NCBI RefSeq assembly: GCF_000189555.1
Contig: NC_017276.1
Reading direction: 5' to 3' (one strand)
Origin: Saccharolobus islandicus REY15A
GTDB lineage: Archaea > Thermoproteota > Thermoprotei_A > Sulfolobales > Sulfolobaceae
DNA length: 64,000 nucleotides
Notes under the pieces: generated by a model
The model's database searches: none
The model's input: the letters and a program-made list of their open reading frames with translations, nothing else
Told to the model about the DNA's origin: nothing
Made by a program: the position numbers and the translations under genes
In this document: positions 8,135 through 61,028 of the stretch, piece by piece
Numbering within the stretch: the stretch's first letter is position 1
Layout: the number at the start of each line of letters is the position of its first letter

Positions 8135-8144
8135 ACTTTTTAAT

Positions 8145-8836: not shown

Positions 8837-8893
8837 ATATAATTCACTTACAAACAAACAAATCAATTTATAAGTAACTAAACTTAATATTAT

Positions 8894-9208: not shown

Positions 9209-9237
9209 GATTCGAGTTAAAAAATGTAAATAATTTT

Positions 9238-9816
9238 TTATTTCATTATTGGTCTTCCTACTGGAGGACTCTTGCCTAAGCTCTCAGCTACTACAATAGC
9301 TAGTCCAGTATACCAGGCTGCAATTGCCGTTAATATTCCTACATATCCACCGGCATGGGATAATCCAACATTTCCAGTCATAGCTCCCACTCCAAGTAGG
9401 AAGAACGTTATCCACAGTAATAAAAATGTCATGAATAATCCTAGATTTGCCTTAAACGTGCCAAACCACATTGCTAGCGTAAAGATTCCAAACGCAATTA
9501 ATACCAGGCCTATAGCTTGAGGTGTGACTCCTCCAAAGAATCCTCCCGCAGTAAGGAAATACCACTCCCAAAATGCACCATAAGTAAAGAAGGCTGTATA
9601 GCCAAAAGTGTTCCCTGCCCTCCATTCCAATATTCCGGCTAATAGCTGAGCCAATCCTCCATAAAACGCCGCTAATCCCAACACCACAGATGCCCCTTGT
9701 GTTATTAACCCTGCATTGAAGGTAGATAACACGAGTGTAGTTAGTGCGAAACCAGAAAGTCCTAAGGGGGCTGGATTTGCCCTTTTTTGTTCTGTCATGA
9801 CATTTTTATATAGCAA
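9238..9816 (-). CDS. Acetate uptake transporter (SatP/YaaH/GPR1-FUN34 family)
   Basis: N-terminal NPAPLGL signature, [16 protein letters not shown]; 6 TM; divergent from acs. Confidence 0.9.
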
Positions 9817-9891
9817 TAATATACTTATAAAGTTTATTACCTTACAGTATTCTACTTAACATTTATTACCTAGAATTCCATTATATAGCAT

Positions 9892-44559: not shown

Positions 44560-45093
44560 TTATCCCAAAAGATATTTTCTTACAAATATTTTTATGTCCT
44601 TAACTTTTCTTAGAGATTTTAAATTTGCTACAATACTATCAACTTTTGTACTATCCTTTTTTCCTATATTTATGCTTTCAGCCTCACTTATGCCTAACTG
44701 ACTTAAATAGTATAGTCTATCCTTTTTTAGGATCAGACCCCTTTTTGATAAGTTATGTAAACGAGAATCTATTCTTGGACTATATATAAAGTATCTTCTA
44801 TTCCATTTAATTGAGAAAATTGGATTCTGCACGTTGTAATGTCTAGATAAATAATCGTAAAGTAGAAATGAAAGTACGAAAAGCCTAGTCTTGTCAGCTC
44901 CTTCACCATATTTATATATTGTAAATAACGTTAGTGAATCAACAGTCATGTGATAAACTACCTCCTGTTCTCTACATAACTTTTCTACGTTACTTTCCGC
45001 TACCGACTTCAAAATATAATAAAGGGAAGTCCAAGATCCATATATTTCAATCTCATCCAAAGCCTCCTTCAAAAGTTGTTGTAATCTATTCAT
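44560..45093 (-). CDS. Hypothetical protein with a YwgA/SocA-like winged helix
   Basis: IYSPRIDSRLHNLSKRGLI...YYLS..G; TAATG overlap with the GH15 stop. Confidence 0.55.
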   Translation of the reverse strand: MNRLQQLLKEALDEIEIYGSWTSLYYILKSVAESNVEKLCREQEVVYHMTVDSLTLFTIYKYGEGADKTRLFVLSFLLYDYLSRHYNVQNPIFSIKWNRRYFIYSPRIDSRLHNLSKRGLILKKDRLYYLSQLGISEAESINIGKKDSTKVDSIVANLKSLRKVKDIKIFVRKYLLG

Positions 45094-46847
45094 TAAACTA
45101 GCCTCTCCTCTAATTCTACTATGGTCATTACCAGTCCTGCATGGGGAAATGCTTGAGGAAAGTTCCCCCTAGGTTCACAAGTATTTTGATCTAGGTGTTC
45201 AGCGAGTAATAATGACGATGTAGAACAATTTATTAGTTTCTCAATTACTTTTTTCGCCTTGCCTATTTCTCCTAACCTAATATAAACCCTGGTTAGCCAT
45301 GTCGATACTAAGGTAAAAGGATGCTTCGCACTCCCCATAAAGTCATCCTTATATCTTAATAAAAAACCATCTGAAATCATTAAATCTTTCTCGATTTTTT
45401 CATGTGTCTTTAAAAATCTAGGATCTTTAGCATCTATAAAGTCGTATAATGGTAAGGTAAGCAATGCAGAATCCACTGAATCACTTCCGTAATACCTCGT
45501 AAAGTAACCAAGTTTTTCTGAGTATCCATTATCAAGAACGTCCTTTCTAATTTCTTCGGCGGTACTAATCCACTCCTCAGCCTCGTTCTTATATCCTAAT
45601 TCCTTTGCGAGTTTACTAGCCCTATCAAGTGCTACCCAATTCATAACTTTAGTATGTGTGAAATGTTCCTCTACCCCTCTTTGCTCCCATAAATCAGTAC
45701 TTTTCCATTTCCAACTCTTCTTGGTCCATTCAGCTATTGCCTCTATAGCCCACCATATTTCGTTAACATATTTCGAATCTTTACTGGTATTGTAATATTC
45801 ATATAATGCATTCATATAGGCACCTTCAACGTCCATTTGTATTTGCATATAAGCTGCATTTCCAACTCTAACTGGAAACGATTTCTTATGGCCCTCGAGC
45901 CAATCCAGAATTTCCTCTGCAGGTGGTGCAGTTCCATCTATTGTGTAAAGCGGATGATCAAAACTCTTAGATGATGGATCTACCATTGCAGTTAGAAAGC
46001 TTATTATATCCCTAGCCTTTACTAGCAATCCTGCCTTTATTAATGCTTCAGCTGAATATGACGCATCTCTAATCCAAACATATCTATAATCCCAATTTCT
46101 TGACCCACCAATTATCTCTGGAAGAGAAGTAGTTGGAGCTGCTATAATTCCTCCAGACGGTTCATAAATTAAGCCAAGAAGTACCAGCAATGACCTATAA
46201 TACGCGTCCCTATATATGTTAACCTTTTTAGCGTTCTCTAACCTTCCTTTCCAATATTTTATAGCCTTGTTTAAGGCTTCATATGGTTCGGAATAGACAA
46301 AGCCCTTATTACTGAATAGACCATATCGTAAATCCTTGGAGTAAAGTAAGTATATATAACCTTTACCTTTCTTCAACGTGAACTCAGTATTGTCAAGGGG
46401 TACATATTCACCTCCTATCAGTATTTCTATACCTTCTTTAGATTTAGGATTTCTAAATATTAAGCCCCTTCTAGCTTTAATTATAGCTGGTGTTACAAGG
46501 CCATATTCAAAAAATGGCTTTATATCTACTTTTAAATCTATTTCACTCTCATATATTCGTATAATTCCCGATAATGATAAGGGTAGGAAGTCTAATATTT
46601 CAGCCTTACCTTTCTCACTTTTGAATACAGTCCTTAAAATCAATGTATTTTCAACATAATCTTCATGGATTATGTCGTATTTTTCATCTGCTGGCCTTAT
46701 ACTGAAATATCCTCCTCTTTCTTCATCCAAAATTCTTGTGAAAATTGATGAAGAATCAAATTTAGGTAATGGTAACCATTCAACACTACCGTTTTTTATT
46801 AAAGCTGACGTAATGCCATTGGAAAGAAATTCGTAGTATCTTATCAC
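45093..46847 (-). CDS. GH15 glycoside hydrolase (trehalase-like), second paralog
   Basis: AAPTTSLPE..GG.RNWDYRYVWIRD, DLWEQRG, LAEHLD, GNFPQAFPH. Confidence 0.9.
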   Translation of the reverse strand: MIRYYEFLSNGITSALIKNGSVEWLPLPKFDSSSIFTRILDEERGGYFSIRPADEKYDIIHEDYVENTLILRTVFKSEKGKAEILDFLPLSLSGIIRIYESEIDLKVDIKPFFEYGLVTPAIIKARRGLIFRNPKSKEGIEILIGGEYVPLDNTEFTLKKGKGYIYLLYSKDLRYGLFSNKGFVYSEPYEALNKAIKYWKGRLENAKKVNIYRDAYYRSLLVLLGLIYEPSGGIIAAPTTSLPEIIGGSRNWDYRYVWIRDASYSAEALIKAGLLVKARDIISFLTAMVDPSSKSFDHPLYTIDGTAPPAEEILDWLEGHKKSFPVRVGNAAYMQIQMDVEGAYMNALYEYYNTSKDSKYVNEIWWAIEAIAEWTKKSWKWKSTDLWEQRGVEEHFTHTKVMNWVALDRASKLAKELGYKNEAEEWISTAEEIRKDVLDNGYSEKLGYFTRYYGSDSVDSALLTLPLYDFIDAKDPRFLKTHEKIEKDLMISDGFLLRYKDDFMGSAKHPFTLVSTWLTRVYIRLGEIGKAKKVIEKLINCSTSSLLLAEHLDQNTCEPRGNFPQAFPHAGLVMTIVELEERLV

Positions 46848-47057: not shown

Positions 47058-48455
47058 ATGAACACAATAGATATAAATTTGTATATTGATTTGCCCTTAT
47101 TTCAAGATAAACATAAATGGATAAATGTGGAAAAGAATAGTATGTATAGCGTTGCTATTAATACTCAAACACCACCAATAAGATTTACATTAACATACAG
47201 AGATTTATTGGAAAAGTATGGCTATCTGGAGCCTCCAATAGATCTTGGTTTATTAAGTAATGAGGATTATCACACTTCAGTTGGTGGAGTTGCGAAAATG
47301 ATGTTGAGTCTCATAAACGCTAATGCCTTCTCGAAATCTAGATGGGTCTCATTAGGACCAGGTTACCCTCCATCGGTAAAAATGACTAGTACTGAAGTTC
47401 ATTTCGTAGATATAGAAGCTAAATCTTTAGTGAATTATACTAGATTTAAAGAGGGTCTATATAATGAAGCTCACGGACTAGGTAAATATGAACTTGTAGG
47501 AGAAGAGTATATAGCTTATGCAAATTATAATTGGCTTTCAGCTCAGAAATTATTGGAATTTTATAAAGACACAGATATCTATTTTATAAATGACTTTCAA
47601 CAGTTATTGGTAGGGGGAATAATTGGACCTTCTGCTCCAGCGGTTTTATGGTATCATATACCCTTTGTTCCAGAGAATTTAAGCAAAAAATTAAGGGAAT
47701 TTCTGATTAAAGCATTTGAGAGCTTCGATCTAGTGATCTTAAGCACAAAAAGGGATCTGGAAGGTCTAGTAAGAACTGGAGCTAAAGTCAAAGTTAAACA
47801 AATTTACCCATTCATAGACCCTTCAGATTATAAGACAGTTGGAAAGAAGGAGATTCAATACGTCGAGGATAAGTATGGATTTAAGGGTGATGATAAGGTA
47901 GTTTTAGTTGTTGCGAGAATGGATCCAATGAAAAGTCAAGACTTGGCGATATCCGCAATAAAGAATGTTGACGCTAAATTAGTATTAGCTGGGGATGGTA
48001 GTTTTACCAGTAGGACTCTGGGGCATGATAAGGGAAGTATGTGGGTAAGTAGGTTAAAGGAATTAGCGAGGAGCTTAGGAGTACAGAATAAGGTCGTATT
48101 TACCGGCTATGTGCCAGATGATGAATTATTTGCACTTTATCAAAGGGCTAACGTGGTTCTTTTACCTTCTAGGATAGAGGGATTTGGGCTAGCAGTATGT
48201 GAAGGTTGGGTTTACGGAAAACCAGCAGTCGTAAGTAGTGGTACTGGGGTTAGTGAACTAATTATAGAGGGAGGAAATGGTTTCGTATTTAAATCCGGAA
48301 ATGTTGAAGAATTGGCTGAAAAACTAAAGTTAGCACTAAAGGATGAGAAGGTTGGATCACTAGGACGAGAAACCGTTAAGAAGTGCTCAGTGAACAATGC
48401 TGTAAATGAACTGAGGGAAGCATTTGACCTAGCGTCTGAAGAGTATAAGAAATAA
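47058..48455 (+). CDS. GT4 (GT-B) glycosyltransferase, possibly trehalose-related
   Basis: [39 protein letters not shown]; divergent from a GH15 gene. Confidence 0.82.
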
Positions 48456-48457
48456 CG

Positions 48458-49357
48458 TTACTGATTATCGAGCATGGATTTTAACTTCTCCCACACGTTA
48501 TCTATATATTGCTCTAAAATCTTTATTTGATCCTCTGTCAATCTCTTGAATCTTCCTTGAACACTCAGAAAGTCTCTTATAGGTCTTCTAGTTCTTCTGT
48601 CAAGACAATGTAAACTTTCTGAACTAATGCTTAATTTTCCATTATAGTATTCAAAGAGGGGCCAATAGCAAGTCTGTACTGCCAATTTTGCCACTTCAGC
48701 AGTTTTTGAAGGATCAAATAACCAACCGTAAGGATCAGGAGTTAGGACGTGAATATATTTGAAACCTTCGACTTGCTTGGCTTTCTTTAACTTCTCTATA
48801 TAATCATGTGGATATCCTACAGATGCAGTAGCCACATAAGGTACGTTATGCGCTATCATTAATAATGGCAAGTTTTTCTTATTTTCCTTTTTTCCCTCTG
48901 GAGTAGTAGTAGTAATTGCTCCAAAGGGAGTTGAGCCACTTCTCTGCCCTCCACTATTCATATAGGCCTCGTTATCCACAGTAAGGTAGAGTATATTATC
49001 ATTTCTCTCAGCAGCTCCGCTTAATGATGCAAATCCTATATCAGCACTTCCTCCATCTCCAGCCCAAACCACTACAGTGACATTCTTACCTCTTTGTTTA
49101 TACGCTCTAGCCAAACCAGCAGCCGTAGCTGGACCAGCCGCAAAGGCAACGTTCACAGTAGGCAAGTTGTAAGCATTATAAGGCGCATTTCCTTGTATTA
49201 CTGAGGAACATCCCGCAACTACTACTAGAACCATATCTTTACCTAGTCCCATTCCTAGCATTCTCATTGCCATATTCTCTGGGCAGCCGGGACAAGCTGA
49301 AGTCCCGGATAAGATACCATTATGCTTATTCAATATCTCTCGGAGTCCTAAACTCAA
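48458..49357 (-). CDS. porB: 2-oxoacid:ferredoxin oxidoreductase beta subunit (TPP-binding)
   Basis: ACPGCP, AGCSSV, WAGDGG..DIG, DNEAYMNSGGQRS. Confidence 0.9.
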   Translation of the reverse strand: MSLGLREILNKHNGILSGTSACPGCPENMAMRMLGMGLGKDMVLVVVAGCSSVIQGNAPYNAYNLPTVNVAFAAGPATAAGLARAYKQRGKNVTVVVWAGDGGSADIGFASLSGAAERNDNILYLTVDNEAYMNSGGQRSGSTPFGAITTTTPEGKKENKKNLPLLMIAHNVPYVATASVGYPHDYIEKLKKAKQVEGFKYIHVLTPDPYGWLFDPSKTAEVAKLAVQTCYWPLFEYYNGKLSISSESLHCLDRRTRRPIRDFLSVQGRFKRLTEDQIKILEQYIDNVWEKLKSMLDNQ

Positions 49358-50528
49358 TCTTCCCCACCTCCTTTGGATAATACCAAATTACGTCATCCTT
49401 TAAGCCTTCTACAAACTTGTTAAATATATACAATAGCTCGCTCTTGTTAACTGTAACACCTCCCAACCCACTCACTACACCTTTTACCTGTGGTACAATG
49501 TCCGATATTGTGGACTTTACTTCAACGTAAAGTGGTCCTCCACCCCTACCAAAACTCGTACTTCTATCTAACACTAGAACAGCCCTTTTATCCTTCAACG
49601 CATTTCTTATCTCCTTCTCACTCCAAGGTCTAAGATACCTTATTCTTAACATGCCTATTTTTATCCCCTTCTCCCTTAATGTATCTACAGCCTCCATGGC
49701 ATCTCCTGCCCAAGCTCCCATTAAAACTATTGCGTAATCCGCATCTTCTAGTTTATACGACACATTTAGTGTGGAGTAATCTCCTAATGGATTAATTTTC
49801 TTATTATATTCTCTTCCTATTTCTTTTATTATATTCTCTGAATTTCTAAGTGCTAAATCTATTGATTCCCTTAGTCTCATATAGCCCTCCGGAGGGAATA
49901 TGTTACCCATACCTATTGGGTCCTCTGGATCTATCACATATGGCTGTCTCCTTGGAGGTAAGAATTCGTCTACTTGATCTTGATCGGGTATTAGCACATT
50001 AGTCTTAGTATGCGAAAGGATGAATCCATCCATACCGACCATCATTGGTAAGAATACTCTCTCATCCTCTGAAATCCTAAACGCTTGTAAAGTTAGATCT
50101 AATGCTTCTTGCGGATTGGATGCAAAAGCCATTATCCATCCACTATCCCTCTCACTTGTAAAGTCGGTATGCTCATTCCAAATGTTCCAAGGAGCTCCTA
50201 CTGCTCTAGTACCTACAACCATTACTACTGGTACTCTACTCCCAGCCACCCACCAAATCATTTCGTGCATGTAAAGCAGGCCTTGCGATGCGGTAGCAGT
50301 AAAAGCCCTAACACCACCTAAAGCAGCACCGAACGTTGCAGCCATTGCCGAGTGCTCACTTTCAACTCTCACTATTTCGGTTTCAATTTCACCTTTAGCT
50401 CTCATCTCAGCTAATTTCTCAATTATCGTAGTTTGTGGCGTTATTGGGTATATTCCTGTAACTCCTACTCTCGCTAGTTTCACACCTAACGCAACAGCTT
50501 CATTTCCAGAAATAATCTTTCTAATCAT
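49326..50528 (-). CDS. porA: 2-oxoacid:ferredoxin oxidoreductase alpha subunit
   Basis: YPITPQT, ESEHSAM, TASQGL, DGFILSHT. Confidence 0.9.
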   Translation of the reverse strand: MIRKIISGNEAVALGVKLARVGVTGIYPITPQTTIIEKLAEMRAKGEIETEIVRVESEHSAMAATFGAALGGVRAFTATASQGLLYMHEMIWWVAGSRVPVVMVVGTRAVGAPWNIWNEHTDFTSERDSGWIMAFASNPQEALDLTLQAFRISEDERVFLPMMVGMDGFILSHTKTNVLIPDQDQVDEFLPPRRQPYVIDPEDPIGMGNIFPPEGYMRLRESIDLALRNSENIIKEIGREYNKKINPLGDYSTLNVSYKLEDADYAIVLMGAWAGDAMEAVDTLREKGIKIGMLRIRYLRPWSEKEIRNALKDKRAVLVLDRSTSFGRGGGPLYVEVKSTISDIVPQVKGVVSGLGGVTVNKSELLYIFNKFVEGLKDDVIWYYPKEVGKIEFRTPRDIE

Positions 50529-50824
50529 TGCTCATTCACCATACTTATAGCCTTAACTGGGCATACATTGGCACAAACTCCACAGCCTTTGCAATACTCA
50601 TAATCCACTCTTACCTTACCATTGCTAGGGACTATTGTGGATTCTGGGCAAAACATAAAACACACTTTACAGCCTATGCACTTGTTATAATCAACAACAG
50701 GTTTTACTATTCTCCATGCTCCAGTTCTTCCTCCAGCACCCTTATTGGGTCTAGTTACAGGAAAGTATTGATATTCAAGCAGTGACATACTCAACACCAA
50801 CTTGTTCATAGGCCAATCTTGCAC
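50525..50824 (-). CDS. porD: 2-oxoacid:ferredoxin oxidoreductase delta subunit (2x4Fe-4S)
   Basis: TGAWR..KP, CIGCKVCFMFCP, DYEYCKGCGVCANVCP. Confidence 0.9.
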   Translation of the reverse strand: MQDWPMNKLVLSMSLLEYQYFPVTRPNKGAGGRTGAWRIVKPVVDYNKCIGCKVCFMFCPESTIVPSNGKVRVDYEYCKGCGVCANVCPVKAISMVNEQ

Positions 50825-51329
50825 CTTTTATGTTGAGTTCAGCTATTTTGCCTCCAAATTCCTCTTCTATTGCTTGCTCAAGTGAAGATAATTTAGGTAT
50901 TCCCATTACCCTTATTAACGCTCCTAAGATGATTACGTTCACCATCGGCCACCCTGACTTTACTAGGCCTAGATCTGTTGCAATTTTAGTTGCATTAACG
51001 TGAAAAGTTCTCCAGTTAAGATCCGGTTTGGAAGGTGAATTTAATATTATCGTCGAAGTATCTTTTAGTCCTCTGAACAAATTCCTAGATATTTGGAGAA
51101 GGGAATTATCTATTACGACCAAGTAATCTGGTTCTTCTACTGGGGAAGTAACCCTAATCGGGTTCTCGGATATTCTACAATATGCCTCTATTTCTGCACC
51201 TCTCCTTTCCGCTCCATAAATGGGAAAAGAAGAAGTGTAAAGGTTTTCATATCCAGCTGCTTCAGCTAATAGTTGAGAAGCCGTTACAACACCTTGTCCA
51301 CCTCTACCGTGGAATCTTATTTCGAGCAA
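50775..51329 (-). CDS. porG: 2-oxoacid:ferredoxin oxidoreductase gamma subunit
   Basis: EIRFHGRGGQG, YGAERRGA, N..ILGA. Confidence 0.9.
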   Translation of the reverse strand: MLEIRFHGRGGQGVVTASQLLAEAAGYENLYTSSFPIYGAERRGAEIEAYCRISENPIRVTSPVEEPDYLVVIDNSLLQISRNLFRGLKDTSTIILNSPSKPDLNWRTFHVNATKIATDLGLVKSGWPMVNVIILGALIRVMGIPKLSSLEQAIEEEFGGKIAELNIKGARLAYEQVGVEYVTA

Positions 51330-51392
51330 TAAATAACCACCTATTAGAACTGTATACTCTTCATCGTTTAAAAAACTAACTATAAAAAATGT

Positions 51393-52589
51393 TTAAACTT
51401 TAGGTAAGCCGTAATATATAACTTTTTCATAAAATTCTTTCCTATGTTCGGTTTCAGAAACAATATTCATAATTTCAACTATAATGATAATTTCAGGAAT
51501 TATGATTGAAATTAATGATATGAGAATCGAAACAATGTTGAGGCTCGTTCTAACTTTAGACCTCATGTGATTAGAGATTATTTCTATAGCTAATATTATC
51601 ACTAATGGAATAATAGTTATTGGATCGTGGGTTAAAAAGTATGCAATTGGTAGAGACATTGTAAAGATACTCCCTACGAATGAAACTGGAGTATCAGCCT
51701 TATACCACGACGGCCTACTTTTCAACATATAGATCATAATACTTGAGATAACTCCAGCGGTTAGAAATACTAACGCGGGATAGTAAAATACGGGTTTGAC
51801 TATACTTAAGATATAGAATAGTATCGATAAGGATGAAAATAATACTTCTCTGCTTAACCAAGATGTCTTCAAGTTGTAAATAACTCTGTAAAACCTATCA
51901 GTTCTCCTAGCGTGATTTACTGATAAGAGTAAAGAAGCTACTAGTAAGATAACGCTTACAATACTCCAGAATGGCAATTTAAAGAGAGAATAACCCAACG
52001 CGAATTCACTCCCAATTGTAAAAGCTAATAGTCCCAAGTAATTCTCCTCCTTTTTAGTATGTAAAACATTTGCTTTAAGGCTCTCCTTTATTTCTGGTTG
52101 TTTTATTACTATCCTTGGTTTAGTTATCTCCGAGGGAGGAAGATAATCTACTTCTGCCTCTCCTTTCTCTATCCAACCAAATGCTAATGCCCCTGTAGGA
52201 CAAGCTTCGACACAGTATGGTATGCCCTTTCCCTCTGCTAAACGAGCATAACAAAAGTTGCATTTAGTCATGATTCCTTCATTATTGAACTTTAAAGCCT
52301 CATATGGACAAGCCCACGTACAGAATCCACATCCTATACATTTATCATCTCTTATTCTGACTATTCCCATTTCGTTCTTCTCTATTGCATTAGCGGGGCA
52401 TACTTGCATACACGTTGGATTATCGCAATGATTACAAGCAATTGAGAGCGCTGTTTTACTCTCACCATATGGCATCACGATTAAGCTTCTCCAGTTAAGG
52501 TTACCATAAGCTTTATTGCAAGCATCAACGCAAGCGTTACAGATTATGCACTTATTATGGTCAAATATGAATCCTAATTTCCTTTCCAT
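51393..52589 (-). CDS. DmsB-like 4x4Fe-4S domain fused to a DmsC-like membrane anchor
   Basis: CIICNACVDAC, CNHCDNPTCMQVCP, CIGCGFCTWACP, CNFC...CVEACP; then S..H......YRV......SWLSRE and about 8 TM helices. Confidence 0.85.
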   Translation of the reverse strand: MERKLGFIFDHNKCIICNACVDACNKAYGNLNWRSLIVMPYGESKTALSIACNHCDNPTCMQVCPANAIEKNEMGIVRIRDDKCIGCGFCTWACPYEALKFNNEGIMTKCNFCYARLAEGKGIPYCVEACPTGALAFGWIEKGEAEVDYLPPSEITKPRIVIKQPEIKESLKANVLHTKKEENYLGLLAFTIGSEFALGYSLFKLPFWSIVSVILLVASLLLSVNHARRTDRFYRVIYNLKTSWLSREVLFSSLSILFYILSIVKPVFYYPALVFLTAGVISSIMIYMLKSRPSWYKADTPVSFVGSIFTMSLPIAYFLTHDPITIIPLVIILAIEIISNHMRSKVRTSLNIVSILISLISIIIPEIIIIVEIMNIVSETEHRKEFYEKVIYYGLPKV

Positions 52590-52655
52590 ATGTTAATATC
52601 TCGTAAAATAGGTTAATAACATTAGCTTTATATCGATATAAATTGATTAAATTTT

Positions 52656-52904
52656 ATGGAAACACCATTTTACAAATACGCATTAATGAGGAATTTCATA
52701 AGAGAGATGATAGAACATGACTCCATTAGTGATTTTGTAAAGGAAAAATTGACTAGTGATCTAGAAATGAAGAATAGATTTTGTAATGAAGATGAGGATA
52801 CTTTAAAACAGTTGATCAGCGAGGTTATTGAATACGTTACTTTGGGTAAAGGGAAGGGAAAAGAAGAGGAAATTTTGAATGCGATAACTAGCTCATGTCG
52901 TTAA
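52656..52904 (+). CDS. Hypothetical protein (82 aa)
   Basis: Acidic helical ORF with upstream TATA; converges on and overlaps the Mo-subunit stop. Confidence 0.6.
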   Translation: METPFYKYALMRNFIREMIEHDSISDFVKEKLTSDLEMKNRFCNEDEDTLKQLISEVIEYVTLGKGKGKEEEILNAITSSCR

Positions 52905-55176
52905 TTAGCTGTAATACATACTCTGGAGTTATTGGTATTTCAATCCTATTGATTGGTTTCTTTAGTATGTCCTCTAAGGCATTAATGATAGCAGCTGGAG
53001 GTACAGTAGCTCCTCCTTCCGCAACACCTTTAGTGCCTAGCGGTGTAAAAGGTGAAGGGCTAATCATATGTTGGATCTCGAATTTAGGTACCTCTTCTGC
53101 CGATGGAATCCAATAGTCTGCAAAAGAAGTTTGCCTTGGAATCCCATTTTCATCATATTCAACTTTCTCTAAGAGCGATGCTCCTATCCCCATTGTAGTA
53201 CCTCCCATTAGTTGTCCATCCACTATCATTGGGTTTATCATAGTTCCGCAATCGCTCAATACTACGTACTTAAGTATTTTTATAAATCCAGTATCCTTAT
53301 CAACCTTAATTACCACACCATGTGCGTTAACACCATAGGTCGTGGAGAAATTCACTCTTCTCTTATCATCAGCTACGTTTACATTATATGAATTGATGGT
53401 AACCGAAACGTCTAATCCTATTTCGTCTCCTATTAAGTACGATCTGTTATATATCATGTTAACTGCTTCCTTAATAGAGAACGACTTGTTACTTATTTTT
53501 ACTATTCCATTATCTATTTTTACCTCGTCTTTTTCAACGTTGAACATTTTAGCTAAGTACTCTCTCATTTTTTCCTTTAATTTTAGGGCAGCGGTGTAAA
53601 CAGCTGAAATACCGACTACAGAGAATCTGCTACCATAAAATCCTGTCCCTGGGGGACCTGCAGTATCGCCTAATACGACTTTCACGTCATCAATCGGAAT
53701 ACCTAGAACATCAGCAACTACTTGGGATATACTAGTTTCATGCCCTGTACCCATAGTATTAGTTGAGAGAAACACCGTAACGTCGCCTCCGCTATCTATC
53801 CTCATATACACACCCTCATAGTAAGGTGTCCTAGGTTTATTGACAACTAGCGTTTGGAAAGCTAATGAAGATCCAGGTTCCAATGCGAATGCTATCCCAA
53901 TTCCCGTGTACTTATCCTTGTCCTTTACTTCCAGTTGACTAACAAGTTTCTTTAATGCCTCTCTGTAATTTCCACTATCATATACTGCACCCGTTATGTG
54001 TTCATAAGGAAGTTTATCAATGAAATTTTTCATTCTTAATTCCATCTCATCAATTCCACTTACTTTAGAAACGCTTTTCACGAGGTTTTCCAATACTAGA
54101 ACTGCTGGTGGAATTCCTAGTCCCCTATATGCCCCCGTTGGTGGTTTATTCGTAACTACTCCGGATACTCTGAACTTAAGGTATTTCATTTTATATGGAC
54201 CAACCAATTGATATATTTGTCTGAGAATTGGTAAGGGTTGGTAAGTATGCAAATATGCCCCAAAGTCCTCTACTAAGTCAATTATTGCTCCTAATAGTTC
54301 ATCCCCCTTATATAAAATCTTTGCAGTGTAATGTCTATCTGGTCCATGAATTGCAGAAATTATATGTTCATATCGAGTCTCTATATACTTTACCGGCCTT
54401 CCAGTTATTATTGAAGCTAATGCTGTCATAGCTATGGGTTTTAGAAAGATCTTTCCGCCAAACCCTCCTCCAGAGTCTGGGACAATTAACCTGACCTTAG
54501 ATCTAGGAATATTGAAGATAATGCTTAATGCCGTCTTAAAGACTTGTGGAACTTGTGTATTTGCATATATTGTTAAGTTTCCGCTAATCTTATCAAATTC
54601 AGCTATTACCCCATTGGTTTCAAGAGGAGCCGGTAGGATCCTATTATATCTAAACTTTTTTTCTACGTAATTGTAATCCTTTGGCTCCTCTCCATATTCG
54701 AAAATATCGCTATACACAATGTTGGAGCCTAGTTCTTTGTGTAAAGTAGGTGAGTTAGGACCTATTGCCTTAAATGGATCAGTTATCGGCTCTCTAGGTT
54801 CATAATCCACGTCAATTAGTTCCAATGTATCATAAACCTCATATCTATCCCTACCTAATACTAATCCTATTGGTTCTCCAAAATACTTTGCCTCATCCTT
54901 AGCTAAAATATACTCCTTTGGTACTCTCTTAAGATCAGGGACGAAAAAGTTGGGCAATGGCGAAAATTCCTTTGTATCTTCAAACGTTATTACGCTGAAA
55001 CCTCTTTCCTCAACCCTTTTGGGATCAATCTTGAATTTAGCCCAAGCATAATTCGACCTCAATACTGCCATGTATAGTATGTTAGGAAAGTAAATGTCGT
55101 CAATGTATCTACCTTTTCCAGTCAAAAATCGTAAATCTTCAACTCTCTTAACTGGACTACCAATGTACAAGGTCAC
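52888..55176 (-). CDS. Xanthine-dehydrogenase-family molybdopterin-binding large subunit (CoxL/CutL-like; not a bona fide CO dehydrogenase)
   Basis: RVEDLRFLTG.G.Y.DD, GGGFGGK, AYRG.G (not AYxCSFR), MGTGHET, DCG.MINP..VDGQ..GG, KGVAEG. Confidence 0.88.
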   Translation of the reverse strand: MTLYIGSPVKRVEDLRFLTGKGRYIDDIYFPNILYMAVLRSNYAWAKFKIDPKRVEERGFSVITFEDTKEFSPLPNFFVPDLKRVPKEYILAKDEAKYFGEPIGLVLGRDRYEVYDTLELIDVDYEPREPITDPFKAIGPNSPTLHKELGSNIVYSDIFEYGEEPKDYNYVEKKFRYNRILPAPLETNGVIAEFDKISGNLTIYANTQVPQVFKTALSIIFNIPRSKVRLIVPDSGGGFGGKIFLKPIAMTALASIITGRPVKYIETRYEHIISAIHGPDRHYTAKILYKGDELLGAIIDLVEDFGAYLHTYQPLPILRQIYQLVGPYKMKYLKFRVSGVVTNKPPTGAYRGLGIPPAVLVLENLVKSVSKVSGIDEMELRMKNFIDKLPYEHITGAVYDSGNYREALKKLVSQLEVKDKDKYTGIGIAFALEPGSSLAFQTLVVNKPRTPYYEGVYMRIDSGGDVTVFLSTNTMGTGHETSISQVVADVLGIPIDDVKVVLGDTAGPPGTGFYGSRFSVVGISAVYTAALKLKEKMREYLAKMFNVEKDEVKIDNGIVKISNKSFSIKEAVNMIYNRSYLIGDEIGLDVSVTINSYNVNVADDKRRVNFSTTYGVNAHGVVIKVDKDTGFIKILKYVVLSDCGTMINPMIVDGQLMGGTTMGIGASLLEKVEYDENGIPRQTSFADYWIPSAEEVPKFEIQHMISPSPFTPLGTKGVAEGGATVPPAAIINALEDILKKPINRIEIPITPEYVLQLINDMS

Positions 55177-56369
55177 ACCTTATAACCAATGAATTTATTA
55201 TAAAGAAATCTTGCTGCACTAATCCTTTGAATATCGTTTGTCCCTTCATATGTTTTCATTATTTGTAGATCCCTTAGCATTCTCTCCAATCCGGTAGAGG
55301 TAGTAACGCCATAACCACCGTAGACACTCATAGCCCTTAATATAATTCTCTCAGCAGATTCGGTGGATATGAATTTCGCCAACGATGCTGCTACTGTGTA
55401 TTCGTTTTCTTTACCATTCTTGAACAATGTCCCGGCCCAATAGGTTATTAGTCTTGCCACTTCCAAATCCGCTAACGATTCAGAAACTTTGGTTTGAACT
55501 AATTGAAATTCCGCTAGTTTCTTTTCGAATGCAGTTCTTTGAAGTGAATAATTTATCATTTTCTCTAATGCAGCTTGTCCAATTCCTAAGGCTTGTGAAG
55601 CTACTATGGTCCTAGCGAAATCAAAAGAACTTACCGCATATTTAAATCCATTGCCTTCCTCTCCTAGTAGATTTTCGGCGGGTGTTTTCACATCCTCAAG
55701 TAAAATTTCAGCAGTATGTGAGGACTTTAATCCAGTAGTTTCGATTCTACTTACTGGTTTCACTGCGTCTTTCTCCACAACAAGCATTGATATGCCTTTC
55801 CATCTGGCCTTAGGATCTGGAGGTGATGTTCTAGCTGCAATTAAGTAATAATCAGCAATATCACCATTAGTTATGAAAATCTTTCTTCCATTTATCACAT
55901 ATTCACTATCTAATTTCTTTGCTGTTGTCTTTATACCAGCTACATCTGATCCAGCCACAGGCTCAGTAACAGCAAATGCAGCTACTTTATCGCCATTAGC
56001 TACTGGTGTGACATATTTTTTCTTTAATTCTTCGTTTCCAAACCTAGATAACGCATAAATAAACATCCAATTTATTAATAAAAATGTGCTAAATGAGGGC
56101 CAAATTCTAGCCATCTCCTCTGTTGCTGTAAGCAATGATAAATAATCCGCTCCTTGTCCCCCTAAATCTTGTCTAGCAAATAAGCCATATAGGCCTATTT
56201 CCTTAGCCTTTTGTTTAACCTCTAAAGGAATATCTAATTCTTTTTCACCTCTTTCAACATACTTTGCCAATATATTTTCAGCAAAATCCCTAACTGCACT
56301 TCTTAATAATTCATGATCTTGCGTTATTTCTACTTTAAAATCCTCCAAGGACTTAAAAGGAAATACCAT
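55173..56369 (-). CDS. Acyl-CoA dehydrogenase (paralog of the gene at 3..968)
   Basis: FAVTEPVAGSD, INGRKIFITNG, YEGTNDIQR. Confidence 0.92.
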   Translation of the reverse strand: MVFPFKSLEDFKVEITQDHELLRSAVRDFAENILAKYVERGEKELDIPLEVKQKAKEIGLYGLFARQDLGGQGADYLSLLTATEEMARIWPSFSTFLLINWMFIYALSRFGNEELKKKYVTPVANGDKVAAFAVTEPVAGSDVAGIKTTAKKLDSEYVINGRKIFITNGDIADYYLIAARTSPPDPKARWKGISMLVVEKDAVKPVSRIETTGLKSSHTAEILLEDVKTPAENLLGEEGNGFKYAVSSFDFARTIVASQALGIGQAALEKMINYSLQRTAFEKKLAEFQLVQTKVSESLADLEVARLITYWAGTLFKNGKENEYTVAASLAKFISTESAERIILRAMSVYGGYGVTTSTGLERMLRDLQIMKTYEGTNDIQRISAARFLYNKFIGYKV

Positions 56370-56393
56370 AAAATAAAATCGTTTTTATCATTA

Positions 56394-57257
56394 TTATTTT
56401 TTCCCTAGCTTACTCAACATAACTTTACAGAAATCGATTGCGTTGCCTACAACTAAGTAATCCGCGTTTTCAAGTATTGGTGCATTCTTATCAGTATTAA
56501 CAGCAACTATAATTTTCGAATCCCTTATACCAGCTATATGTTGAGGCTGACCAGATATTCCCAAGGCTATATATAATTTGGGCCTAATTCTTAAACCGGA
56601 TAAACCTATTTGCCTATCCTCTGAAACCCAATTGAGCTCAGCAGCTACCGGTCTGCTTCCACCAACTGCTCCACCTAACGCTTTTGCCAATTCTTCTGCG
56701 TATTTTACGTTTTCCTTAGATCCAATCCCTCTTCCTACGCCAACTACAATATCTGCAGTAGCTAAATTAACTCCAGAGGAAGTTGATTTTCTACCGGCAA
56801 TTTTAACCCTACCCTCTTTCAATTGAACCTTCTCTACACTAGGCTGAAGTTCCTTAGGTTGTAATTGTGCATTTGCAATAGTTATAACAATTGGTAACTC
56901 ACTCTCTAGAGTAACCAACCCCATTCCACTATAGGCTACCCTATTTAACGTGATTTTCTTATCTTCAACCTTTAGTGAGACTACATCAGTAACTATAGGT
57001 AACTTTAACCTCCCCGCTACTCTTCCAGCTATTGCCCTATCCCTTCTCACATTTCCAGTTAGTATTACATCTGGAGAGAGTGAAGATATTAGATCTACAA
57101 TACCATCTTCATCCATTTTATCAATAATGTATAGTTTGTTTACGAACTTAACGTTCTCGTTGTCGGATATTCCTATTACTTCTCCTCCGAAACTTTGAGC
57201 CACAGCTGCTGCCATTTTTAAGAATACTGGACTTTCAGAGAACACTACAGCTTTCAT
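56394..57257 (-). CDS. etfA: Electron transfer flavoprotein alpha subunit
   Basis: VGVGRG, GGSRP, QIGLSG, GISGQPQH.AG, VNTDKNAPI. Confidence 0.92.
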   Translation of the reverse strand: MKAVVFSESPVFLKMAAAVAQSFGGEVIGISDNENVKFVNKLYIIDKMDEDGIVDLISSLSPDVILTGNVRRDRAIAGRVAGRLKLPIVTDVVSLKVEDKKITLNRVAYSGMGLVTLESELPIVITIANAQLQPKELQPSVEKVQLKEGRVKIAGRKSTSSGVNLATADIVVGVGRGIGSKENVKYAEELAKALGGAVGGSRPVAAELNWVSEDRQIGLSGLRIRPKLYIALGISGQPQHIAGIRDSKIIVAVNTDKNAPILENADYLVVGNAIDFCKVMLSKLGKK

Positions 57258-57258
57258 A

Positions 57259-57987
57259 TTAGATCACCCCATCAGACTTTAAGTATTCAATTAATTTATC
57301 AACAGCCTTATTTATGTCACTTTCCTCAATAACTATTCTCTTTCGATTCACGATCATTGGTTTAATTTCCCTTATTCTAACCTTAGATTGTGCATCAAAT
57401 TTGACTTCCTTAACTGGCTTCTTAGAGGATTCCATTATTTGCTTAACGCTTGGGATTCTAGGAGTATTTATTTCACCACCAACACTCACAACTAAAGGTA
57501 GACTTGATTCAACAGTCTCAATATAGCTTACCATTCCCCTATCAGCTGTAACCTTATTTCCCTCGATCTTAAGTGATTTTACGTTCGAAATGTAAGGAAG
57601 GCCAAGAAGTTCAGAAACGTAAGCGGGTAAGGCTGAAGTTCCACTATCAGTTGTCATTTCCGAAAATAATATTATATCTGGATTTAGCGTCTTCACATTT
57701 TCAGCTATCGCCATAGCAGTAACGTAGACGTCTGGATCTTTAACTAAGATAGCTATTACTTCATCAACTCCCATAGCTAAGGCTTCCCTAATGCTTTTCC
57801 TATCGTTACTACCTACTGTAATACCCGTAACCTTACCTCCAAACTTCTCCTTTAACCTTATGGCTTCTTCAATAGCGTTCTTATCATAAGTACTTACCTT
57901 TAACGGGGCATCAGTATTTAGCTTGTCCCCCACAACCTTAACCATTTGATCATCTGGAACTATCTTAAAACCAACAACAATATTCAT
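57259..57987 (-). CDS. etfB: Electron transfer flavoprotein beta subunit
   Basis: K.VPD, YD.NAIEEA, ALAMG.D, INTPRIPS. Confidence 0.92.
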   Translation of the reverse strand: MNIVVGFKIVPDDQMVKVVGDKLNTDAPLKVSTYDKNAIEEAIRLKEKFGGKVTGITVGSNDRKSIREALAMGVDEVIAILVKDPDVYVTAMAIAENVKTLNPDIILFSEMTTDSGTSALPAYVSELLGLPYISNVKSLKIEGNKVTADRGMVSYIETVESSLPLVVSVGGEINTPRIPSVKQIMESSKKPVKEVKFDAQSKVRIREIKPMIVNRKRIVIEESDINKAVDKLIEYLKSDGVI

Positions 57988-58083: not shown

Positions 58084-59967
58084 ATGATCTTGCTTCCAAT
58101 AATAATTACTATTACTATGCTTCTGGCCATGTTTTACGTAATTTACGAAGTGGAAAGGTGGAGATCAACAAGGAGAGTATTATTAGCACTATACGTTGAA
58201 GGAATGATGCTAACAATGAATATAGGAGGTTATCTTTATCTAATTAGCAACAATCCGTTCTACTTTTTGATAGCTAACTCCGCATATATGATTTTCGGAT
58301 TATATCCATTACTTATCGTGAAGGAAGTTAAAATGAGACAATTTGTATACAGCTTATTTGCGGTACTTATGGTAATTTCTGAAATAGCAATGGGAGCGTT
58401 AATTTACACTTTGGAAACCTCAATTCCAGCTAACATAGATACGTCTATTGGGAACATATACTTCGTGAGTGTAATGATGGTGGAAATGGCGTTTACGCTA
58501 ATCTTGTCCTTTAAAAATATTGATAAAACATTGAGGAACTATCTAATTGGTTTATTACTCTTAATGCCTTGGTTTCCCCAAGTGTTTCCTTTAATAAGTT
58601 TACCAATATGGCTCTCTACCATCATAATGATTGGGAATACGATACTAATTTACGATTCTCTGTATAAGCAGAGATTAAGGGCTTCACAAGAGACCTTTAC
58701 AACGATCGAATTAACATCTATTTTCACATTGATGATGATAGGGGAGTTCTTATTCTTCCTCTATGACACCTTAATAGTTTTTGACATATCTATGATAATA
58801 GGAATGGCGTGGTTCGTTTATAGGGCATTGGCTGGACCAAACCCGAGAAAAGGGAATTACACTAGAAATCCTTTATTGGCGTTCACAATAATCTTCCTCA
58901 CATTCATTATGGAATTCTTCATGGGAGGGGTATTGGATTTCGTTGAAGGAATCTTTTCGCCCAGAATTTCTGGATTTATAAATAGTCTAACATTACCGTG
59001 GCAACCCTTGACAAATCCAATAAATGCGTTGTGGGATTTCATAGACTTAGTTGGATCAGTTCTGGGTTCCATGTGGTTTTTAATAATGATGGGAATAGAG
59101 ATGGGATTCTTAGCGTTTAAGAAAATGTTAGAAATGAGAGTTAAGGAAGTAAGGGTTAGGATGAGTTTAATGATCCTAGCTTATGCGTTATACACTATTT
59201 ACATCCCAATGTTTAGCCCACTTTCAGATCGTCTACCCTACATACCCTATATGTGGTCAATGGGGATAGGAACGCTAGGAGGATTTTCAAATTCCGTACT
59301 CTTAGGTCTTATAGGAACTTACGTGGTTTACGCAATTCTCTCTTTCTTATTCGGCTCGAGAAATTTGTGTTCTGTAAGTTGTACTGCACCCTTAATGTAT
59401 CAAGGTACCTTTTATGATTCACTTAAGGTTTACAATAGAACCTCAAAAGTAGGGAGGAAGTTGATGACGTCCAGAAGACCGAATTGGGTTAAAGGGATAA
59501 CGCTTGGTGTTTCAATATTAGTACTAATAGCTGCAGTCATATCATATCTTAATTCATTGGGCATGATTAGTTTTACGCTATTTGGCACTGATATTACGTT
59601 TCTAATATATTTTATGTGGTTTGATATAATTTGGTATCTCTTATTCATTTCTATACCATTCCTAGGTACATTCGCGTGTGTTACCACTGGATATTGCTAT
59701 TGGGGAGTATTTAATCAAGCCATTAGTAGTATAGGTTTATTTAGATTGAAGGTAAAGGATCCGATGTTATGCGTTAACTGTAAGACAGTGGATTGTGCCT
59801 TTGCTTGTCCAGTTGGAATTACAGATATGAGGGGATGGTTTATAAAGAAAGGGGAGTTTAAGTCATTTAAGTGCGTTGGAATAGGCGAATGTGTTAATGC
59901 TTGTCCATATGATAACATTTATTTCTACGATGTAAGGCAATGGATAAAGGAAAGGTTTAAACACTAA
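58084..59967 (+). CDS. Polytopic membrane protein with a C-terminal NapH/MauN-like 4Fe-4S domain
   Basis: Many TM helices; CSVSC..P, C...GYCYWG, CVNCKTVDCAFACP, CVGIGECVNACP. Confidence 0.78.
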   Translation: MILLPIIITITMLLAMFYVIYEVERWRSTRRVLLALYVEGMMLTMNIGGYLYLISNNPFYFLIANSAYMIFGLYPLLIVKEVKMRQFVYSLFAVLMVISEIAMGALIYTLETSIPANIDTSIGNIYFVSVMMVEMAFTLILSFKNIDKTLRNYLIGLLLLMPWFPQVFPLISLPIWLSTIIMIGNTILIYDSLYKQRLRASQETFTTIELTSIFTLMMIGEFLFFLYDTLIVFDISMIIGMAWFVYRALAGPNPRKGNYTRNPLLAFTIIFLTFIMEFFMGGVLDFVEGIFSPRISGFINSLTLPWQPLTNPINALWDFIDLVGSVLGSMWFLIMMGIEMGFLAFKKMLEMRVKEVRVRMSLMILAYALYTIYIPMFSPLSDRLPYIPYMWSMGIGTLGGFSNSVLLGLIGTYVVYAILSFLFGSRNLCSVSCTAPLMYQGTFYDSLKVYNRTSKVGRKLMTSRRPNWVKGITLGVSILVLIAAVISYLNSLGMISFTLFGTDITFLIYFMWFDIIWYLLFISIPFLGTFACVTTGYCYWGVFNQAISSIGLFRLKVKDPMLCVNCKTVDCAFACPVGITDMRGWFIKKGEFKSFKCVGIGECVNACPYDNIYFYDVRQWIKERFKH

Positions 59968-60050: not shown

Positions 60051-61028
60051 ATGCCGTTAAAGACATTTGATACAATAATAGTTGGGGCAGGAATTGCTGG
60101 ATTAAGTGCTGCATTATATTCTTCTAGACAAAAACTATCAACGTTAGTACTATCAAAAGATCTTGGTGGGCAATTAACGTTAACAGATTTAATAGAGAAC
60201 TATCCCGGAATAGAGTCAACTGGAGGATTAAGTCTGGCACAAAAGATTGAGAAACAAGCTAAGAAGTTCGGCGCGGAATTCATTTATGGAGAAGAGGTTA
60301 AGGAGATAGCGCAAGAGTCTGACGTATTCATAATAAAGGGAATTAAAGGTGAATACGCTGGAAGAGCTATAATTTTAGCGTTTGGTAAAACGCCTAGGGA
60401 AATTAACGTCCCTGGAGAGCAAGAGTTTAAAGGAAAAGGAGTATCATACTGTGCAATATGTGATGCGGCATTCTTCAAGGGTAAGCCAGCAGCCGTAGTA
60501 GGCGAAGGCGAGCCTGGGATAGAAGCTATAGAGTTGTTGTCTAATTACGCAAATCCAGCATATTATATTACCTCATCGTCTTATCTGGCGGGTGAGGAGG
60601 AGATCGTGAAGAACGTGTTGAATAAGCCTAACGTTAAAATATTTACGTCCTCAAAAGTTTTAGAAATAAGAGGGAACAGTAAGGTTGAGGAGATTATGAT
60701 AAAGAAGGGAGATGAGATAATATCGTTGAGGGTTGATGGTGTTATAATTGAAATGGGTTATGTTCTGAAAACTGAGTTCCTAAAAGGCTTTGTTGAGTTA
60801 AATGAGAAAGGCGAGATAGTTGTCGATGAATTAGGAAGAACAAGTAGAGAGGGAGTATTTGCAGCGGGGGATGTTACTCAAACGCCGTATAAGCAAGCCG
60901 TTGTAGCTGCCGCTGAGGGAGTTAAGGCTTCATTATCAGCCTATAATTATATTAGAAGTAAGAAGGGTCTCCCACCAGTTAACGTAGATTGGAAAGCTGA
61001 AAAGAAGAAGGTTAGCTTCAGGCTCTAG
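60051..61028 (+). CDS. trxB: Thioredoxin reductase
   Basis: [24 protein letters not shown]...G..A. Confidence 0.9.

Follow-up and report, generated by a model that had tools for sequence, protein, structure and literature searches.

Gene content of the locus

The window examined here, a 64-kb stretch of the genome of Saccharolobus islandicus REY15A (contig NC_017276.1; positions given below are those of this stretch), includes nine genes on the minus strand. They extend from position 57987 down to 48458 in the order etfB-etfA-acd-coxL, a gene for a DmsB-DmsC fusion protein, and porG-porD-porA-porB, which encode a four-subunit 2-oxoacid:ferredoxin oxidoreductase (OFOR). The assignments, made from open reading frames and from Pfam and NCBIfam matches, reproduce an earlier reading of the sequence (the original prediction), in which the same nine genes had been placed at the same coordinates on the minus strand of an aerobic thermoacidophile, as S. 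islandicus is. The fusion and the porGDAB genes are the subject of this report, and the fusion is proposed below to be the probable membrane partner of the OFOR.

The fusion gene (51393–52589, minus strand) encodes a protein of 398 amino acids (aa), of which residues 1 to ~148 are DmsB-like and residues 185–388 form a membrane domain. It is followed on the same strand by porG (50775–51329; 184 aa from a TTG start) for the γ subunit of the OFOR, porD (50525–50824) for the δ subunit with two [4Fe-4S] clusters, porA (49326–50528; 400 aa) for the α subunit, and porB (48458–49357; 299 aa from a TTG start) for the β subunit, which would carry thiamine pyrophosphate (TPP) and the proximal [4Fe-4S] cluster. 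The listed GTG start of porD gives a product of 99 aa; as the orthologues are 85–90 aa long, the true start is probably near position 50797. Genes within the por block overlap, by 4 nt for porD/porA and by 32 nt for porA/porB.

The etf, acd and coxL genes precede the fusion and por genes in the order originally described, but the nine genes do not constitute one operon. The gap between coxL and the fusion gene measures 299 nt and contains a plus-strand gene for an 82-aa protein (52656–52904), previously missed, together with a compact divergent promoter region. Hence, etf-acd-coxL and fusion-por are separate transcription units.

The DmsB-DmsC fusion protein

That the protein is a fusion of DmsB-like and DmsC-like parts, as originally proposed, was borne out by hhalign comparisons, in which both halves match the respective Escherichia coli proteins. 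Residues 1–148 align with residues 1–188 of the 205 residues of DmsB (probability 100%, E 1e-39), and residues ~214–320 align with DmsC (probability 85%, E 6e-6). Pfam Fer4_11 also matches the protein, and the NCBIfam model DMSO_dmsB gives 113 bits, which is under its equivalog cut-off of 214. Four groups of cysteines for [4Fe-4S] clusters are present (C14/17/20/24, C52/55/60/64, C84/87/90/94 and C110/113/126/130), and all 16 cysteines are invariant across 43 archaeal and bacterial fusions.

The AlphaFold2 model of the fusion (pLDDT 87.9, pTM 0.85) has eight transmembrane (TM) helices within residues 185–388. Foldseek matched the Fe-S half to PsrB, ArrB, EbdB and FdnH at E values of 5e-9 to 9e-8, the match to PsrB (2vpw_B) having an E value of 5e-9 and a TM-score of 0.77. 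The membrane half matched PsrC (2vpw_C; E 2e-3, probability 1.0, TMt 0.52).

The quinone-site residues of DmsC are Ser62, His65, Ser82 and Glu87 (PMC8076601), and these align with S223, H226, S243 and E248 of the fusion. E267 and R271 of DmsC align with E379 and R383, the former arginine being the one of TM helix 8 (TMH8) that is kept in nearly all NrfD-like subunits (PMC8076601). Residues H226, S243, E248, E379 and R383 are invariant in the 43 fusions, and S223 is present in 40 of them. With its 16 cluster cysteines, sequence similarity, eight helices and quinone-site residues, the fusion has the features both of a DmsB-like four-cluster protein (FCP) and of a DmsC/NrfD-type anchor; judged from sequence and model, its C-terminal half is a quinone anchor of the DmsC/NrfD type.

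Neither a signal peptide nor a twin-arginine motif was found in the fusion, whose N-terminus reads MERKLGFIFDHNKC and whose first cluster cysteine is residue 14. Lysine and arginine residues number 20 on the side of the membrane that carries the Fe-S domain versus 2 on the opposite side. From the missing signal and this charge distribution, a cytoplasmic orientation is predicted for the Fe-S domain and the quinone site; the OFOR, which is also signal-less, is on that side as well. By this prediction, the protein departs from enzymes exported by the twin-arginine translocation (Tat) system with A and B subunits and quinone site on the membrane's P-side.

The four-subunit oxidoreductase

PorG is matched by Pfam POR (E 4e-38) and by the NCBIfam subfamily model PorC_KorC (230.9 bits against a cut-off of 81). 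PorD, which has two CxxCxxCxxxCP motifs, scores 113 bits with PorD_KorD (cut-off 60). PorA contains the Pfam domains POR_N and PFOR_II, and its nearest solved structure is the α subunit of the pyruvate:ferredoxin oxidoreductase (PFOR) of Methanosarcina (9bt4_B, E 1e-83). PorB scores 498.7 bits with the PorB equivalog model, above the cut-off of 405, and includes the GDG...N motif for TPP as well as Cys22/25/50. Pfam matches cover all four subunits, with TPP_enzyme_C as a domain of the set, and the TPP motif and the cluster cysteines are present, as in the four-subunit OFORs of the group formed by the pyruvate (POR) and 2-oxoisovalerate (VOR) enzymes.

As regards the choice between these two types, the β subunit gives 499 bits with the POR model and 419 bits with the VOR model, both above their cut-offs. 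The α subunit gives 399 bits with PorA_Arch, below the cut-off of 550, 344 with the Pyrococcus POR model and 334 with the VOR model, and the scores of the δ subunit against the OFOR models are 102, 91 and 77. A porDAB operon regulated by Ss-LrpB (Sso2128-2130) has a permease gene and lrpB as neighbours (PMC4046817); judged by these described neighbours, it appears to be a different, paralogous locus.

Conservation of the cluster in Sulfolobales

The arrangement was compared with that at other loci (designated by L numbers), with flanks of up to 10 kb per side. A contig scan with the fusion alignment, which contains generic Fe-S patterns, listed 80 matches, among them three Sulfolobales loci; the bacterial matches served as a contrast set, and the other Sulfolobales loci were obtained by exact-protein look-ups. 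The ten Sulfolobales loci represent eight genera or lineages and comprise the window, S. solfataricus, S. acidocaldarius, Metallosphaera, Sulfurisphaera, Candidatus Aramenus, Acidianus copahuensis, Sulfolobaceae RB850M, Sulfodiicoccus and a related metagenome contig (L088).

In all ten, the porGDAB genes come next after the fusion gene, on its strand, whereas the upstream and downstream neighbours vary. Retention of fusion-porGDAB in 10/10 loci with differing flanks is far beyond chance. The invariant core is the fusion gene with porGDAB, and coxL and the etf genes lie outside it.

The spacer between the fusion gene and porG is 47–73 nt long across the loci, except in Sulfodiicoccus acidiphilus (L089, AP018553.1), where a frameshift in the fusion gene widens the called gap to 216 nt. 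The frameshift in this locus (8001–9907) is near the 3' end of the gene, with the C-terminal segment SE..R..F..YYGLP in another frame, and porG is split into pieces of 56 and 116 aa; the related metagenome contig L088 is intact. The apparent frameshifts in both genes reflect either joint decay (pseudogenisation) or an error of sequencing or assembly.

The lack of a DmsA partner had been singled out as the unusual feature of the fusion, and this was upheld. Using the E. coli DmsA and Bacteroidales DmsA-type proteins as tblastn queries, no DmsA-type gene was found in the 64-kb window or in the fetched flanks of the Sulfolobales loci. A DmsABC-type complex iron-sulfur molybdoenzyme is therefore not encoded here, there being no gene for a molybdenum-bis(pyranopterin guanine dinucleotide) (Mo-bisPGD) subunit with the B and C parts. 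In contrast, the bacterial full-length fusions with enough flanking sequence (L004-L032 and L034) nearly all adjoin a DmsA-type Mo-bisPGD gene, and no por genes were found near the bacterial homologues, in both cases among the matches listed. In the nearest homologue outside Sulfolobales (L090), the fusion gene has a Rieske gene on one side and a Mo-bisPGD gene on the other. In the maximum-likelihood tree, the 19 Sulfolobales fusions group as a single clade (support 100/99) on a long stem, which agrees with the partner having been switched once.

The bacterial two-gene unit, widespread in contigs of metagenome-assembled genomes from Bacteroidales, Ignavibacteria and Acidobacteria (L004-L032), consists of a DmsA-type Mo-bisPGD protein of ~680 aa and an adjacent or nearby DmsB-DmsC fusion. 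The Bacteroidales DmsA-type protein (L004) starts MKAHNTACPRNCYSTC, directly with the FS0 cysteine motif, and has no Tat signal. Going by sequence, these units imply a putative family of quinone-linked molybdoenzymes that faces the cytoplasm and is uncharacterised.

The fusion might likewise serve as the anchor of a catalytic subunit of the DmsA/Sre/Ttr type, or of some other type, encoded elsewhere in the Sulfolobales genomes, the adjacency to por being an inherited gene order. All characterised DmsB/DmsC-type pairs, and the bacterial fusions as well, do serve a Mo-bisPGD subunit, and Sulfolobales genomes encode COG0243 enzymes such as SSO2795; however, SSO2795 has its own adjoining COG0437 Fe-S subunit, SSO2794 (PMC2739297). 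It would also be unparsimonious for adjacency to DmsA to be lost in every genus while that to por was kept, and neutral gene order seldom survives at ~50% protein identity with both flanks reshuffled. A distant catalytic partner is on this balance improbable.

Intergenic regions and the divergent 82-aa gene

The 66-nt divergent control region (52590–52655) between the 82-aa gene and the fusion gene includes, as read from the sequence, a palindrome and a TATA-like box. The palindrome, TTTATATCGATATAAA (52627–52642), is perfect over 16 nt, recurs unchanged in S. solfataricus and almost unchanged in S. acidocaldarius, and could be a pair of back-to-back TATA boxes or a candidate regulator-binding site. 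The TATA-like sequence TTATTAA (52613–52619) is positioned at -30 to -24 from the ATG of the fusion gene, and no GGTG motif is present ahead of that start. AT-rich boxes occur at corresponding positions in the divergent regions of other Sulfolobales loci.

The 63-nt spacer between the fusion gene and porG (51330–51392, minus strand) has a T6 tract directly after the fusion stop codon (51384–51389), which is followed by a second T6 tract, TTTTTTAAA (51367–51375), and by GGTG (51338–51341), 9–12 nt before the TTG of porG. T-tracts and GGTG are conserved between loci, the pattern TAAACATTTTTTAT...CTTTTTTAAA...GGTG(N7-8)TTG being found in most of the Sulfolobales loci examined. The spacer may be read through, with a ribosome-binding site inside it, or it may terminate transcription in part and contain an internal promoter. 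From the sequence, co-transcription of the fusion and por genes is likely.

The T-tracts together with a TATA-like box in the spacer also suggest a promoter of its own for porG, and this would suit a fusion that acts as a free-standing ferredoxin:quinone oxidoreductase, re-oxidising soluble ferredoxin after its reduction by any OFOR, co-located or co-regulated with porGDAB but forming no stable complex with its products. The genomic context agrees with such an enzyme just as it does with a dedicated partner of the OFOR; PorD already provides the usual exit at which ferredoxin docks, and the handling of OFOR electrons in aerobic Sulfolobales has been called enigmatic (PMC13768988). Yet there would be no reason for a general ferredoxin oxidase to remain at one OFOR operon in every genus, with the abundant two-subunit OFORs encoded elsewhere, and the apparent frameshifts in both the fusion gene and porG of S. 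acidiphilus hint at a shared fate. A free-standing ferredoxin oxidase is accordingly considered rather unlikely, though a serious alternative.

Homologues of the 82-aa protein, 78–85 aa in length, are encoded at the same divergent position in 9/10 Sulfolobales loci. Their alignment shows invariant F5, Y6, A9, L10, R12, N13, C43 and C81, the first six being part of an N-terminal FYxxALxRN motif. The AlphaFold2 model (pLDDT 91.9) is all-helical with five helices, and no match was obtained in Pfam, in NCBIfam or among PDB folds. The 27 clusters found for this family are all from Sulfolobales and all annotated as hypothetical. The protein may be a regulator, an accessory protein or an assembly factor.

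The upstream acd, etf and coxL genes

The acd gene (55173–56369, minus strand) encodes a product with three acyl-CoA dehydrogenase Pfam domains. Its best PDB matches are enzymes of the butyryl-CoA dehydrogenase (Bcd) and short-chain acyl-CoA dehydrogenase type, and it is a generic short-chain/Bcd-like member of the family. Orthologues with 60–75% identity lie upstream of the fusion on the same strand in six of the nine assessable loci (the window, L087, L003, L006, L007 and L008) and are absent beside the cluster in Metallosphaera, S. acidocaldarius and Sulfodiicoccus.

Upstream of acd are etfA (56394–57257; Pfam ETF and ETF_alpha) and etfB (57259–57987; Pfam ETF), both on the minus strand, for the subunits of an electron-transfer flavoprotein (ETF). 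The etfBA pair adjoins the module in Saccharolobus alone; that of Sulfurisphaera is divergent, and fixCX genes go with it. No FixC or fixCX genes were found in the 64-kb window. The link of acd to the module is real but looser than that of por, and the link of ETF is lineage-specific.

These genes raise the question of whether the fusion is the quinone reductase for ETF and the acyl-CoA dehydrogenase, in place of an ETF:quinone oxidoreductase. The upstream position of acd in 6/9 loci, the adjacency of etfBA in Saccharolobus and the lack of fixCX in the window would all be in keeping with that role. On the other hand, Metallosphaera, S. acidocaldarius and Sulfodiicoccus keep fusion-por with neither acd nor etf nearby, the etfBA genes of Sulfurisphaera have their own fixCX beside the cluster, and the invariant partner is por. 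Such a substitute is very improbable.

A gene located at 58084–59967 (plus strand), divergent from etfB, encodes a polytopic membrane protein of 627 aa that has a ferredoxin domain of the 2x[4Fe-4S] type at its C-terminus. The family occurs in Sulfolobales, other Thermoprotei and Thaumarchaeota, where its members bear the annotation 'polyferredoxin' or 'integral membrane 4Fe-4S protein'. The homologue in M. sedula adjoins a gene for haem-copper oxidase subunit I (L092). The protein was considered as a conserved partner of ETF and dropped, as in neither M. sedula nor S. acidocaldarius is the 50%-identical homologue beside etf.

The coxL-like gene (52888–55176, minus strand) encodes a large subunit of the xanthine-oxidase family (Pfam Ald_Xan_dh_C, MoCoBD_1 and MoCoBD_2), which scores 515 bits with the NCBIfam model glyceraldDH_alpha, below the cut-off of 790. 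Its GAYRGLG motif indicates that it is not a form-I CO dehydrogenase; the protein may be a hydroxylase acting on a CoA thioester. The 4-nt overlap of acd and coxL noted originally was seen at 55173–55176, and coxL is translationally coupled to acd and stands outside the conserved module. A coxL orthologue adjoins the cluster only in Saccharolobus and in A. copahuensis (62.6% identity; L007), where the acd-coxL pairing is also found. No CoxS or CoxM gene was detected in the 64-kb window by tblastn with the Metallosphaera proteins, so that a CoxLMS-type heterotrimer is not encoded in the window; the partner subunits may be encoded elsewhere.

On the basis of this gene set, a pathway parallel to anaerobic phenylacetate oxidation (Pad) had originally been offered, in which CoxL would take the place of PadB and, with the fusion, oxidise the α carbon of an acyl-CoA; the 2-oxoacid so formed would be decarboxylated by the OFOR. 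The gene order does superficially parallel padBCD-padEFGHI, acd and coxL are coupled through the 4-nt overlap and paired again in A. copahuensis, and the PadI, PadE, PadF and PadG models do match the fusion and the por proteins. However, the scores are far under the Pad equivalog cut-offs (PadE 112 against 300, PadF 69 against 150, PadG 271 against 700, and PadI 227 against 700), and all four OFOR subunits score higher with POR/VOR models. There is no PadB/DmsA Mo-bisPGD gene in the window, and large subunits of the xanthine-oxidase family pair with the [2Fe-2S] protein CoxS and with CoxM, neither of which is in the window, rather than with DmsB-type proteins. Between coxL and the fusion gene lie a gene on the opposite strand and a promoter region, and a coxL orthologue is adjacent in two genera only. 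The locus is therefore not of the Pad type, and the pathway, largely refuted by synteny, was rejected as the least probable explanation of all those considered.

Genes for HpcH/CitE-like lyases lie directly beside fusion-por in Sulfurisphaera (L003, 14099–14899) and in A. copahuensis (L007, 8997–9725), and L003 also holds genes for thiolases, an acyl-CoA synthetase and a 4HBT thioesterase. There are hints here that the OFOR substrate may derive from a CoA-ester cleavage pathway. The acd/etf/coxL region can be described as a CoA-ester catabolic neighbourhood, which fits an OFOR that works within CoA-ester or amino-acid catabolism.

Further out in the window are a GT4 glycosyltransferase gene (47058–48455, plus strand), a GH15 glucoamylase/trehalase-like gene (45093–46847, minus strand) and a gene for a thioredoxin-reductase-like flavoprotein (60051–61028, plus strand; 297 bits against an equivalog cut-off of 343), all of which look unrelated to the module.

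Proposed route of electrons

Conserved synteny, sequence, and predicted structure and topology lead us to propose, with moderate confidence, that the fusion is functionally coupled to the OFOR as its dedicated membrane partner, the two together making up a membrane-bound 2-oxoacid:quinone oxidoreductase. The conserved unit would comprise the divergent 82-aa gene and fusion-porG-porD-porA-porB. In the cytoplasm, the OFOR would oxidatively decarboxylate a 2-oxoacid, either pyruvate or a wider set that includes branched-chain 2-oxoacids, to acyl-CoA and CO2. Electrons would leave via the two clusters of PorD and pass into the chain of four clusters in the DmsB-like domain on the cytoplasmic side, and caldariellaquinone would be reduced at the DmsC-type site at the cytoplasmic face of the eight-helix anchor. 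Soluble ferredoxin would thus be bypassed. We infer the OFOR's docking on the fusion, its substrate, the direction in which electrons flow and any coupling to proton translocation.

A membrane sink passing electrons from the OFOR or ETF to caldariellaquinone had been put forward as the second option of the original prediction. Its OFOR part is favoured by the intact wire and quinone site, the predicted location on the same side of the membrane, the permanent adjacency of por, and membership of a family that otherwise appears to serve a cytoplasm-facing molybdoenzyme. For its ETF part, the link is lineage-specific, the etf genes being direct neighbours in Saccharolobus.

Electrons could in principle travel the opposite way, with quinol electrons and membrane potential driving the reductive carboxylation of acetyl-CoA (pyruvate synthase) in autotrophs. 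Facultative autotrophs are numerous among the species with the cluster (Metallosphaera, Acidianus and Sulfurisphaera), NrfD-type subunits have been proposed to conduct ions, and some run reactions that are endergonic (PMC8076601), and four-subunit PORs are described as carboxylating in vitro by Xiao et al. 2021, as cited in PMC13768988. Against this, the gap of ~600 mV between caldariellaquinol and ferredoxin is, by our own estimate, far too large for one anchor to bridge plausibly, and the cluster is also carried by the obligate heterotrophs S. acidocaldarius and S. islandicus. Operation in reverse is thus highly improbable, ranking just below the ETF-linked role discussed above.

Comparison with known systems

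The fusion resembles E. coli DmsABC in the DmsB alignment with its four 4Fe-4S motifs, in the DmsC quinone-site residues, the PxWY and TMH8 E-x3-R-x2-F-Y motifs, and in having eight TM helices. It differs in that the B and C parts are fused, no DmsA is encoded in the window or flanks, Tat export is lacking, and the predicted location is cytoplasmic rather than periplasmic; electron flow would probably be toward quinone and not from quinol. PsrBC of Thermus thermophilus (2vpw) is the best structural match for both halves and likewise has its quinone site beside the last Fe-S cluster, but it works with a Mo-bisPGD catalytic subunit, faces the periplasm, and has B and C as separate proteins.

A precedent for a cytoplasm-facing module of the FCP/anchor kind is the sulfite:quinone oxidoreductase SoeABC (PMC8076601). 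By its description, this enzyme is similar in that an FCP and a DmsC-like anchor, proposed to face the cytoplasm, reduce quinone, and SoeC shares the His65/Ser82 numbering with DmsC (PMC8076601); it differs in that SoeA is a molybdoenzyme and the subunits are unfused. In HybA/HybB of hydrogenase 2 (Hyd-2), DsrO/DsrP, QrcC/QrcD, and ActB/ActC of alternative complex III, a four-cluster protein and a cofactor-less quinone anchor serve a partner that contains no molybdenum (PMC8076601), as is proposed here. Their partners are, however, hydrogenases, cytochromes or DsrK, and the modules are periplasm-facing or mixed. The 2021 review of the NrfD family lists no OFOR-linked complex and no B-C fusion (PMC8076601).

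The four-subunit archaeal OFORs, such as the Methanosarcina acetivorans PFOR (9bt4) and the Pyrococcus POR and VOR, have the same γ-δ-α-β gene order and domain set. They are soluble and reduce free ferredoxin, whereas the enzyme described here belongs to an aerobe and adjoins a membrane Fe-S/quinone module. A 2026 review of PFORs mentions neither DmsB/DmsC nor a membrane anchor (PMC13768988).

PadI, the β subunit of phenylglyoxylate dehydrogenase, contains a DmsB-like domain fused to a PorB-like part, and the PadI model covers residues 8–137 of the fusion and 15–296 of PorB. This domain shows that a DmsB-like polyferredoxin can be the electron outlet of an OFOR. PadCD, of the phenylacetyl-CoA:acceptor oxidoreductase PadBCD, are DmsB/DmsC-like. 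In the Pad system of Aromatoleum/Azoarcus, this pair serves a molybdoenzyme and not the OFOR; neither a PadB-type Mo subunit nor a PadH-type flavoprotein adjoins the cluster studied here.

Points against the proposal

Several points weigh against a dedicated partnership of the fusion and the OFOR. The evidence consists throughout of genomic context and of sequence and structure prediction, and no published complex, activity or expression data on this cluster were found in a literature search with incomplete coverage of Sulfolobus omics. The window fusion gives no match to Pfam DmsC (PF04976) at E<0.01, though many orthologues carry precomputed PF04976 matches; the DmsC homology is drawn from these, from the hhalign probability of 85%, and from the residue and fold matches. 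The conserved T-tracts of the spacer could be a terminator with an internal promoter, in which case the fusion gene and porG may be transcribed apart. A molybdoenzyme partner may be encoded elsewhere in the genome, as the DmsA search covered 64 kb. If electrons at ~-500 mV go directly to a quinone with a potential near +100 mV, energy is wasted relative to a route of the complex-I type. OFORs with a δ subunit are usually oxygen-sensitive, which is odd in an aerobe, and those purified so far from Sulfolobales are of the soluble two-subunit type (PMC13768988, PMC9405506).

A further-reaching and more tentative possibility is that of a respiratory supercomplex, in which the OFOR would be docked on the fusion, with the 82-aa protein possibly a subunit or assembly factor, and electrons would reach caldariellaquinone without soluble ferredoxin. 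Such a complex may conserve energy, since anchors of the NrfD type have been proposed to conduct ions and a difference of about 600 mV would be available.

Significance

The locus presents a module and an enzyme that are each known, in a combination and a predicted orientation that are new. It bears on an open question, namely how low-potential electrons from OFORs return to the respiratory chain in aerobic archaea that depend on ferredoxin. As S. acidocaldarius and S. islandicus are genetically tractable, the hypothesis is directly testable. If true, it would add a new entry point to the archaeal respiratory chain and make the OFOR a new catalytic partner of the widespread FCP/NrfD module, and it could explain why Sulfolobales keep a δ-subunit OFOR of the oxygen-sensitive type beside robust two-subunit enzymes.

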